From: Octopus vulgaris
Lineage: Eukaryota
Reading direction: 5' to 3'
NCBI GenBank assembly: GCA_951406725.2
Contig: OX597815.1
Location: 43,586,001 to 43,650,000, forward strand
DNA: 64,000 nt
The notes under the pieces are model-generated. The model did not search any database. It saw only the letters and a program-made list of their open reading frames with translations, and was not told the origin of the DNA. Within the stretch, counting starts at the first letter, position 1, and each line of letters starts with the position of its first letter. Below are positions 18,892 through 31,890 of this stretch, piece by piece. A program made the translations under genes and the position numbers.

Positions 18892-18932
<41 letters not shown>

Positions 18933-19115
18933 AAAGGGCTTAGTAAAATAAATTACTTCGCCGCATACTGAACTCATTAGAAATAGCAGCTAAAAAACTT
19001 TTTTAAAGCTATTTCTAATACTTAAAGAAAATCTCTCTCATATATAGCGCCTGCCTAATTCAACTCACAAAAGTTTGGGGGTAAGGACATTAAAAAATCA
19101 AATGCTAAGGTTATT

Positions 19116-19167
19116 TGAGTACGTACGTTTCAAGATTAGTCAAAACAACACTTCTATCTTCAGCTCA
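19116..19167 (-). ncRNA. Type I hammerhead ribozyme
   Basis: TGAG-CTGAAGA-TAGAAGTGTTGTTTTGACTAATCTT-GAAA-C(GTAC)G-TA^CTCA; stem I TGAG/CTCA; palindromic ACGTACGT stem III; imperfect stem II. Confidence 0.7.
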
Positions 19168-19293
19168 GAAATTCCTTGGTTTGGATTTGGAAACACTGAA
19201 AGTAAGAACATACCCTTTCGAAGATTCCCTTTCGAATCTTCGAAAGGGTATGTTCTTACTTTCAGTGTTTCCAAATCCAAACCAAGGAATTTC

Positions 19294-19343
19294 TGAGCTG
19301 AGATAGAAGTGTTGTTTGACTAATCTTGAAACGTACGTACTCA
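19294..19343 (+). ncRNA. Defective hammerhead (mirror copy)
   Basis: Same motif, but the core reads CTGAGA (1-nt deletion at N7). Confidence 0.6.
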
Positions 19344-19633
19344 AATAACCTTAGCATTTGATTTTTTAATGTCCTTACCCCAAACTTTTGTGAGTTGAAT
19401 TAGACATATATGAGAGAGATTTTCTTTAAGTATTAGAAATAGCTTTAAAAAGTTTTTTAGCTATTTCTAATGAGTTCAGTATGCGGCGAAGTAATTTATT
19501 TTACTAAGCCCTTTTATATAATGTAATAATTTGAATTCGCCTTAAATGGTCCCTTTGCATACTGAACACTTGGTGAAATTGATTAATAATTAATTAATTT
19601 TACCCTCAATTGTTGAAATTATATATATATATA

Positions 19634-22109: not shown

Positions 22110-22582
<473 letters not shown>

Positions 22583-22583
<1 letters not shown>

Positions 22584-23561
22584 GGATAAAATCTTTATAA
22601 GAAATTATCAAGTAGTTAGCGTGAAAAACCTCGTAAGAGAAAAATCTGTAACTTTTTTCAACTTTGAAAATACTTGTGTGGTACCTATGAATAATAGTAC
22701 CCGCTATATAATATAAATAAGTATTTTCAAAGTTGAAAAAATTTACAGATTTTTTCTCTTACGAGGTTTTTCACACTAACTACTTGATAATTTCTTATAA
22801 AGATTTCATCCTATTTTTTTTTCATTTATATTTTTCACCGGAATAGTTCAATACTGAATTTTTGTTCCGAGTAGGCAAGTTGGTACCGAAATGCATTGCG
22901 AAAAAGCCCGCCATTTTCATAATATATATATATCTTATATAGAGGGTACTATTATTCATAGGTACCGCACGCTAGGAGGGACTTTTGCAGTCAAAACTAC
23001 TAAAATAAACAAATTGTACCGAATGCAAAACTTCAAAGCGAGTCATTTAAAAACAGAATTTAGTTACATATCACCTGTGATTTCGCAATCAATGCAGAAT
23101 ATGCATTCTATGCTCTTCAGTGCAACGAACTCAAGACATGTAAGAAAAAACACAACATCACATACCCGACAACCAACCGTAGAATTCGCCGCGGCATGTA
23201 CAAATTTTTATCTTTACATATCTATGAAAATGGCGGGCTTTTTCGCAATGCATTTCGGTAACCAACTTGCCTACTCGGAACAAAAATTCAGTATTGAACT
23301 ATTCCGGTGAAAAATATAAATTTTAAAAAAATAGGATAAAATCTTTATAAGAAATTATCAAGTAGTTAGTGTGAAAAACCTCGTAAGAGAAAAATCTGTA
23401 ATTTTTTCAACTTTGAAAATACTTATTTATATTATATAGAGGGTACTATTATTCATAGGTACCGCACAAGTATTTTCAAAGTTGAAAAAATTTACAGATT
23501 TTTCTCTTACGAGGTTTTTCACGCTAACTACTTGATAATTTCTTATAAAGATTTTATCCTA
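22583..23561. mobile_element. About 980-bp nested palindrome with a hammerhead-bearing core
   Basis: Arms 22583-22920 and 23223-23561 are reverse complements; each arm holds its own hairpin of about 230 bp; unique core of about 300 bp. Confidence 0.9.
23063..23126 (-). ncRNA. Type I hammerhead ribozyme
   Basis: GTTGCA-CTGAAGA-GCA(23 nt)TGC-GAA-ATCAC(AG)GTGAT-A^TGTAAC: 6-bp stem I, G-C closed stem II, 5-bp stem III, AUA cleavage triplet. Confidence 0.85.
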
Positions 23562-23568
23562 TTTTTAA

Positions 23569-23636
<68 letters not shown>

Positions 23637-23679
23637 GTTTGTGTGTATGTGTATGTCCTCTATAGGAGCAAGGCGTGTT

Positions 23680-23860
23680 ATTCAGAGCGAAAGGGCTAGT
23701 CAATTACATTGACCACCCACCTCACCCCAGAGCTCGACTGGTATTTATTTTAACGACCCTGAGAGGATGAAGGGTAAAGTTGATCGTAAATGATTCAACT
23801 TAGAACGTAAAGTCGGAAGGAAAACTGCTAGCCATTCCGACCGGCGTCAACTCGCCTTGT
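23680..23860 (-). mobile_element. Degraded family A SINE
   Basis: CTCGACTGGTATTTATTT..CGACCCTGAGAGGATGAAGG body; CAACTCGCC head. Confidence 0.7.
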
Positions 23861-24347
23861 GTATGTATGCATTATAACCATGCATGTGTGGATACCTGGC
23901 TGGCTAGCTGGTTTGATGATTGTGTATTTAGGTGTCTCTCTCTCTCTCTCTAGGTATAGTTTTATGCTTATTTCTCTGCTAGTTGTAAAACATTCTATAT
24001 ATACGCCTCTGTGTGTTTGATGTTTGCATGTACGCTACTAGAGCAGAAGGATACAATTACAAATGTAATAATCCTCATCCCGCTGGTTTGGCGATTGTGT
24101 TTATCAAAACTTAGGAGAATAAGTCGATGTGTTTAATAAGGTTAAAATGATTTAAACATTTATAACTTGTCCTGCACTATGGCGAATAAAGGAGAATGAT
24201 ATGGGTATAAATTCTATTTTGTTTTCAGTTACTAAAAAGTAGTGGGGAAAAGTTTAATAGATAATTGGTGCAGTGGCTGGTATTTGTCAGTTTAAAGACC
24301 ATTTGATTACCGGAAAACATTGTGAATCATAAGTATTTGTGATAATA

Positions 24348-31829: not shown

Positions 31830-31890
31830 CATGATACACACGTACCCGAGTTTCAAGATGTTTACCTTTCATCAGCGTGTGACAATCATG
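31830..31890 (-). ncRNA. Type I hammerhead ribozyme
   Basis: CATGAT-TGT-CACACG-CTGATGA-AAGGT(AAAC)ATCTT-GAAA-C(TCGG)G-TA^CGTGTG-T-ATCATG. Confidence 0.9.

Follow-up and report, generated by a model that had tools for sequence, protein, structure and literature searches.

A hammerhead-bearing nested palindrome of Octopus vulgaris as a probable scrambled insertion of a non-coding retroelement

In a stretch of 64,000 nucleotides of the Octopus vulgaris genome (hereafter the window; all coordinates are window positions), a palindrome of about 1 kb carries a hammerhead-like motif at its core. The locus raises the question of whether such a structure has a design of its own or is one product among many of a mobile element. 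The analysis pointed to the latter: the locus is most probably an old copy of a non-autonomous, non-coding, hammerhead-bearing retroelement, i.e., a non-LTR retrozyme or Penelope-dependent element. The copy itself is a scrambled insertion, partly tandem and partly inverted, in a (TA)n microsatellite, and elements of this kind are already known from other invertebrates.

Structure of the locus

An inverted-repeat search of the window delimited a nested palindrome of 979 bp at 22583–23561, with (TA)n at both ends (22540–22582 on the left and 23567–23627 on the right), representing the two halves of the insertion target. Global alignment of the whole arms, of approximately 335 bp each, showed an identity of approximately 97%, with 325 of 335 columns equal and the remainder made up of 7 mismatches and 3 one-base indels. 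The search returned the large repeat as two segments, 22581–22743 / 23400–23562 (163 nt, 98%) and 22751–22884 / 23261–23394 (134 nt, 97%). Additionally, each arm carries its own hairpin with a 90-bp stem, found at 22564–22644 / 22751–22831 in the left arm and at 23327–23407 / 23486–23566 in the right arm. The nested palindrome of about 1 kb described in an earlier note, made from the sequence alone, was thus borne out, and the layout proposed there, X-L-X'-Y-[L' + core]-Y'-X-L'-X', proved correct in the inverted and direct repeat searches. The reappearance of the small-hairpin loop at the edge of the core, also claimed there, is real: the loop sequence is present a third time, as a direct repeat (22915–22970 = 23412–23467, 89%).

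Read from left to right, X (22583–22675, minus strand) is an inverted copy of the 3'-terminal module of the repeat family described below (positions U400–497 of its unit, U), with the canonical 3' end towards the left (TA)n. The left hairpin loop, L (22676–22718, plus), corresponds to the unit's L segment in sense orientation and contains a small palindrome, GGTAC..GTACC. It is followed by the 3'-terminal module in sense (X', 22719–22810, plus), contiguous with L as in a tandem, and by Y (22811–22914, plus), in which the sense unit continues to approximately U301 and ends tail-to-tail at a short TA run. One complete unit of 497 bp in the order L'-core-Y'-X occupies 22915–23411 on the minus strand, which is the sense strand, and includes the type I hammerhead motif (23063–23126, minus). 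The first 56 bp of a second tandem unit (L', 23412–23467, minus) form the right hairpin loop, so that the antisense stretch 22915–23467 amounts to 1.1 units. The right end consists of another inverted copy of the 3'-terminal module (X', 23468–23561, plus), with its canonical 3' end towards the right (TA)n.

Three variants were common to both arms and absent, or nearly absent, in 28 other family copies, which indicates that the arms arose as sisters rather than by two separate insertions. Inside each small hairpin, X and X' differ by a C/T change that recurs in mirror image in the opposite arm; the small hairpin therefore existed before the large duplication arose.

Immediately to the left of the (TA)n, the window contains a fragment of an ultra-high-copy repeat (22425–22540). 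Summed over contigs, its depth is 10^7 in DNA runs, vs. 10^5 in runs whose RNA origin is a guess. A GGTTC motif resembling a B box is present on the minus strand, and the repeat is probably a tRNA-headed SINE.

The repeat unit and its family

A search of the 2.8-Gb, 227-contig genome with the 979-bp palindrome gave 3,216 first-look candidates, among which only the window locus matched the query over positions 1–979. The typical match covered query positions 333–885 (window 22915–23467) at 92–96% identity and often occurred head to tail. The segment 22915–23411 was taken as the unit U, and the head-to-tail tandem period in the family was 492–497. Arrays were short, with 1.1–2.7 units; in locus L011, Tandem Repeats Finder (TRF) reported a period of 492, 2.7 copies and 97% identity. 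The core of the palindrome together with its right arm represents one 497-bp unit of an abundant family. The third copy of the loop follows from this tandem periodicity, the second unit starting at 23412. Rather than a unique structure designed as such, the palindrome is one among thousands of copies of a retroelement unit.

The unit has a G+C content of 0.33. Folded as a circle, the sense monomer was predicted to be more stable than its shuffles (z = −3.35), with 64% of bases paired, vs. z = −1.0 for the antisense monomer. A 139-aa ATG open reading frame (ORF) antisense to the hammerhead (22891–23310, plus) has 131 of its codons inside the unit, an open length reached in 2 of 2,000 shuffles, and it was open in 13 of 29 copies of the family as represented in the window (family A). 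As a gene this ORF was rejected: it had no Pfam match, was closed in a second subfamily (B, described below), and showed no codon-position bias, with variants spread evenly over the three codon positions (79/71/74). No tRNA-like head was found in 22300–23900 using ARAGORN. Short Logan contigs of two runs guessed to be RNA (X13 and X14) cover the unit. One contig from a run guessed to be RNA spans the predicted cleavage site uncut, which was counted against the retrozyme interpretation.

As anticipated in the earlier note, a read-through RNA of the palindrome was predicted to fold into a double-stranded stem of about 340 bp (MFE −590 kcal/mol). Since the standard 497-bp unit of the family is without the palindrome, long dsRNA is a by-product of the window copy and not the mode of action of the family. 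It appears improbable that palindromic copies give rise to near-perfect hairpin RNAs of approximately 340 bp with a self-cleaving loop that serve, as sources of silencing small RNAs or as heavily edited ADAR substrates, against the family. If this were the case, such hairpin RNAs would constitute a built-in brake of the host, derived from the faulty integration of the element itself.

Ends, target and strand switches

By mapping U on 28 distinct family loci, the ends of 46 same-orientation runs could be scored. Sense 3' ends fell at U1–10 in 23 of the 46 runs and at U400–415 in 21, both tracts being TA-rich, while the 5' ends in the 28 loci were scattered, from U37 to U274 and beyond. Fixed 3' ends combined with scattered 5' ends are the pattern of a retroelement with 5' truncation, and this pattern identified the minus strand of the window as the sense strand, the same strand that carries the hammerhead. 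The target was recognizable as well: of the 28 loci, 26 had (TA)≥5 on at least one side and 17 on both. At least one strand switch was present in 16 of the 28 loci, at points that differed per locus. The proposal of the earlier note that one hammerhead-bearing template was copied with strand changes holds; its observation is confirmed, and its interpretation is partly supported.

A cluster of 5' ends (14 of 46) was located within U37–56, around the small GGTAC..GTACC palindrome in L. Four loci of this cluster were favoured by the query, and the excess is accordingly real but overstated; a transcription start is an alternative reading of it. The 5' ends were not enriched at the predicted cleavage site, with 1 of 46 within 1 nt of it (locus L006).

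The long inverted termini of the window copy, its lack of coding capacity and its TA-rich flanks would also suit a DNA transposon of the fold-back or MITE type, targeting TA and bounded by terminal inverted repeats of 335 bp. However, termini of 335 bp were seen in no other scored copy, the standard form of the family is a head-to-tail tandem with one end fixed and one variable, and the inversion points vary between loci. Elsewhere the copies form asymmetric tandems whose inner ends vary, and this explanation was rejected and is given almost no chance of being correct.

The strand switches also bear on whether the palindrome could be an assembly artefact originating from a fold-back chimeric long read. 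Assembly difficulties with structures of the Penelope type have been described (Craig et al., 2021; PMC8557442), and none of the short Logan contigs spans the locus. Against this, the 7 substitutions and 3 indels between the arms are unlike a self-folded read, junctions of a similar kind lie at differing points in 15 other loci, and such junctions were also found in contigs of an independent DNA run. In that run, head-to-head joints within the family were present at single-copy depth, which indicates that such junctions exist in real DNA. Run X4 showed two weak joints, one linking 22503 with 23697 and the other 22511 with 23738, with sides of 20–25 nt; they may represent an empty allele or noise from repeats. 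On the basis of the arm differences and of the junctions at the 15 other loci and in the independent run, an artefact was rejected as highly improbable.

A more serious alternative retains the same retroelement but has the large palindrome arise later, when the X-L'-X' hairpin of an already inserted copy seeded an inverted duplication at the DNA level, through fold-back or template switching at a replication fork or break. The layout of 22915–23561 alone is the same as that of a complete insertion, L004, and L002, L003 and L018 carry terminal X-loop-X' hairpins whose junctions differ slightly. Y meets L' tail-to-tail at a short TA run (22914/22915), a junction unusual for the family; the 3' end at U301 that this junction creates is one of only 2 non-canonical 3' ends among the 46. 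The first of these features and the junction favour a later duplication, as does the mirrored C/T difference, by which the small hairpin predates the large duplication. However, the outer end of the left arm lies at most approximately 15 nt from a canonical 3' end and abuts (TA)n. Such a position is what priming of the other target strand on the RNA would give; under a random DNA duplication it would be a coincidence. Inverted pieces are, moreover, frequent in the family (16 of 28 loci). A DNA-level origin is therefore considered unlikely, though with a chance that is far from negligible.

In the preferred interpretation, i.e., an insertion of the retroelement scrambled during its integration, a nick in a (TA)n microsatellite would be the site of reverse transcription of a multimeric or circular RNA of the unit, primed when the TA repeat anneals to either of the two TA-rich tracts in that RNA. 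Each of the two target strands would be able to prime and the polymerase to change strand, and this combination would yield partial tandems joined head-to-head to inverted, 5'-truncated pieces. The window copy would then consist of 1.1 tandem units capped on the right by the X-L'-X' hairpin, and repetition of the right 335 bp in inverted orientation on the left would have produced the nested palindrome.

The hammerhead motif

The hammerhead motif, on the minus strand from 23126 to 23063, consists of stem I (6 bp), CUGAAGA, stem II, GAAA, stem III and UA. The conserved core CUGANGA...GAAA...UH with A15.1-U16.1 is present at 23120–23069 (minus). Stem II comprises 3 bp (GCA/UGC), a 3 × 3 internal loop, 6 bp (AAUGCA/UGCAUU) and a 5-nt loop; stem III has 4 bp including 15.1-16.1 (A15.1-U16.1 plus 3 bp) and a tetraloop, and helix I is open. 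Cleavage was predicted between 23069 and 23068, after UA, the cleavage triplet in family A being AUA. The intact core bases, three stems and cut position given in the earlier note were recovered here.

A strict type I descriptor matched this single site in the 64-kb window and none of 300 dinucleotide shuffles. Its thresholds were set after seeing the candidate, and a loose descriptor, with 0.04 matches expected per window, gives the fairer figure; it matched the 23063–23126 site and 31837–31881. At the latter (minus), a compact hammerhead-like motif, CUGAUGA...GAAAC...GUA, forms part of another element. The Rfam hammerhead models gave no match for the window copy, either at the gathering thresholds or at E ≤ 10 on 1.3 kb and on 101 nt, and the same scans returned only chance miRNA-like hairpin matches. 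Genome-wide, Rfam Hammerhead_1 gave 263,217 first-look candidates, and 8 of 73 that were scored were above the cut-off; the genome is very rich in hammerhead motifs.

If the motif resembled a hammerhead by chance and the family were an ordinary satellite or SINE-like repeat, the missing Rfam match for family A would be expected. Furthermore, the MFE fold is a different one, lying 1 kcal/mol below the hammerhead fold (−13.5 kcal/mol), and some copies have core mutations: the 41 copies of family A showed scattered changes, including three with CGGA for CUGA. Family A copies alone are too similar to inform on the ribozyme.

A more distant relative came from a locus of a Penelope-like element (PLE), L048, which holds a sequence approximately 79% identical to the unit, as an insertion unrelated to that PLE. 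A search with this relative gave at least 1,645 candidates of a subfamily B, approximately 79% identical to A, and 28 loci were taken from the genome. Subfamily B retained the hammerhead, with CUGAUGA, CUGAGGA or CUGACGA followed by GAAA and the same helix III, and with AUC, AUU or AUA as the cleavage triplet; H17 was A, C or U but never G in 6 B copies and the A consensus. In an alignment of 53 copies (34 A and 19 B), 91.6% of structure cells were paired vs. 19–42% with slid partners. Two pairs of helix II showed compensatory changes, one C-G (22 copies) or U-A (19) and the other A-U (24) or G-C (16), and one-sided changes in helix I kept pairing (G-U to G-C, U-A to U-G). Free variation in the core (A/U/G/C) was confined, across the 53 copies of the two subfamilies, to N7 in CUGANGA.

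This covariation amounts to few independent events, essentially one A/B split; still, the few pair changes together with a core that varies freely only at N7 make a chance motif unlikely. In the A vs. B profile, the primary sequence of the hammerhead was not more conserved than the rest of the unit, which means that the support for it is structural. One B copy aligned end to end and in the same register with Rfam Hammerhead_HH9, with a score of 15.8 bits (E 0.11), well below the gathering cut-off of 52 bits. Considering the compensatory changes between the subfamilies, the restriction of free core variation to N7 and H17, the absence of matches in the 300 shuffles and the position of the motif on the independently inferred sense strand, a chance look-alike was judged very improbable. 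The ribozyme motif is conserved between the subfamilies.

Elsewhere in the window, a stretch at 18907–18953 matches the L/X' part of a subfamily B unit over 48 nt (81%) and lies at the edge of a 600-bp palindrome (18925–19522); that element may be a distant relative.

Penelope-like elements as a putative helper

The genome contains more than 6,000 GIY-YIG candidates and many open frames of 781 aa. One such frame has RVT_1 as well as a C-terminal GIY-YIG domain, and the GIY-YIG domain was C-terminal in all 30 loci sampled. In a PLE family represented by L047, L052, L054, L060, L066 and L069, the elements end at (TA)n approximately 1 kb after the stop codon, their 3' ends consisting of a T-rich stretch followed by (TA)n. 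As these are canonical PLEs with a C-terminal endonuclease, (TA)n targeting is not limited to Naiads in this genome. A minimal hammerhead-like motif, GAUAAGG...GAAAC, was observed in the same six loci, approximately 100 nt upstream of the 3' end.

This canonical PLE family (RVT_1 plus C-terminal GIY-YIG), with its (TA)n target, is a plausible helper of the unit, which would depend on a Penelope-like reverse transcriptase/endonuclease and whose RNA may self-cleave and circularize. A comparison of the unit with 30 of the more than 6,000 GIY-YIG loci, including 1.5-kb flanks, revealed no shared sequence apart from the insertion in L048.

A third family, at L035:1061–1145, has only an X-like module of 70 nt at 1073–1142, 78% identical to X and located next to (TA)n. 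This hints that the X module is the part recognized by the enzyme, and the module may be a recognition end common to several non-autonomous families. In the same locus, L035, an unrelated, Rfam-positive Hammerhead_1 was found on the opposite strand at approximately 1501–1551.

Implications

These results add a family with two subfamilies and thousands of copies to the hammerhead-bearing, non-autonomous retroelements of the Penelope type; in the literature searched, no description of a retrozyme was found for the host lineage. The ribozyme variant escapes the Rfam models, yet it is backed by covariation, a warning that censuses relying on models undercount ribozymes of this type. The catalogue of junctions may help to define the integration of PLEs; it records two probable sites of priming, both TA-rich, a scatter of 5' ends and strand switches clustered around GGTAC..GTACC. 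For genome annotation, palindromes such as the one described here are to be regarded as insertion scars and not as designed structures.

Comparison with known systems

The motif shares its core and three-helix layout with Rfam Hammerhead_HH9 (RF02275) and Hammerhead_1 (RF00163). Unlike matches to these models, the B copy scored far below the gathering threshold and family A was without any match.

In the twin priming of L1, reportedly described by Ostertag and Kazazian (2001), a second target strand primes inside the same RNA, so that the 5' part comes out inverted and is joined to a 3' part in direct orientation. Internal second-strand priming on the same RNA would likewise invert the 5' part in the family described here. 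The enzyme family differs from that of L1, however, several switches are possible per insertion, and both outer ends of the window copy are canonical TA-rich priming sites.

Insertions of PLEs are described as highly 5'-truncated partial tandems, frequently accompanied by an inverted 5'-truncated copy, which leads to inverted repeats (Craig et al., 2021; PMC8557442). PLEs show a bias towards microsatellites, (TA)n in the case of Naiads, by an integration mechanism that these authors called undefined; canonical PLEs carry hammerheads in pseudo-LTRs, whereas Naiads, of which cephalopods have only remnants, are without hammerheads (PMC8557442). The family resembles PLE insertions in its 5' truncation, partial tandems and adjacent inverted copy, and also in its microsatellite target bias and in a hammerhead that lies within the repeated sequence (Craig et al., 2021; PMC8557442). 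In contrast to PLEs (PMC8557442), it has no ORF for a reverse transcriptase or endonuclease, and the unit shares no sequence with the PLE 3' ends sampled (30 loci).

Non-LTR retrozymes have type I hammerheads in low-GC tandem repeats of 150–450 bp and give circular RNAs that are self-paired (Cervera and de la Pena, 2020; PMC7229834); they derive from PLEs according to a recent preprint (bioRxiv 10.64898/2026.07.22.740005). Compared with the published range, the unit of the family, at 497 bp, is slightly longer, its arrays are short (1.1–2.7 units), and stem II is long with a 3 × 3 internal loop, combined in A with the triplet AUA (PMC7229834). Retrozymes were reported to be expressed as circular RNA (PMC7229834), while for the family circular RNA and cleavage are predictions. 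Inverted pieces are not mentioned for retrozymes in that paper, in which the word "inverted" does not occur (PMC7229834). In common with animal non-LTR retrozymes, on the other hand, the family carries in its sense strand a type I hammerhead whose helices are stable (Cervera and de la Pena, 2020; PMC7229834). It shares with them, too, a non-coding, low-GC unit arranged head to tail, a structured sense monomer and a host genome with many PLEs (PMC7229834).
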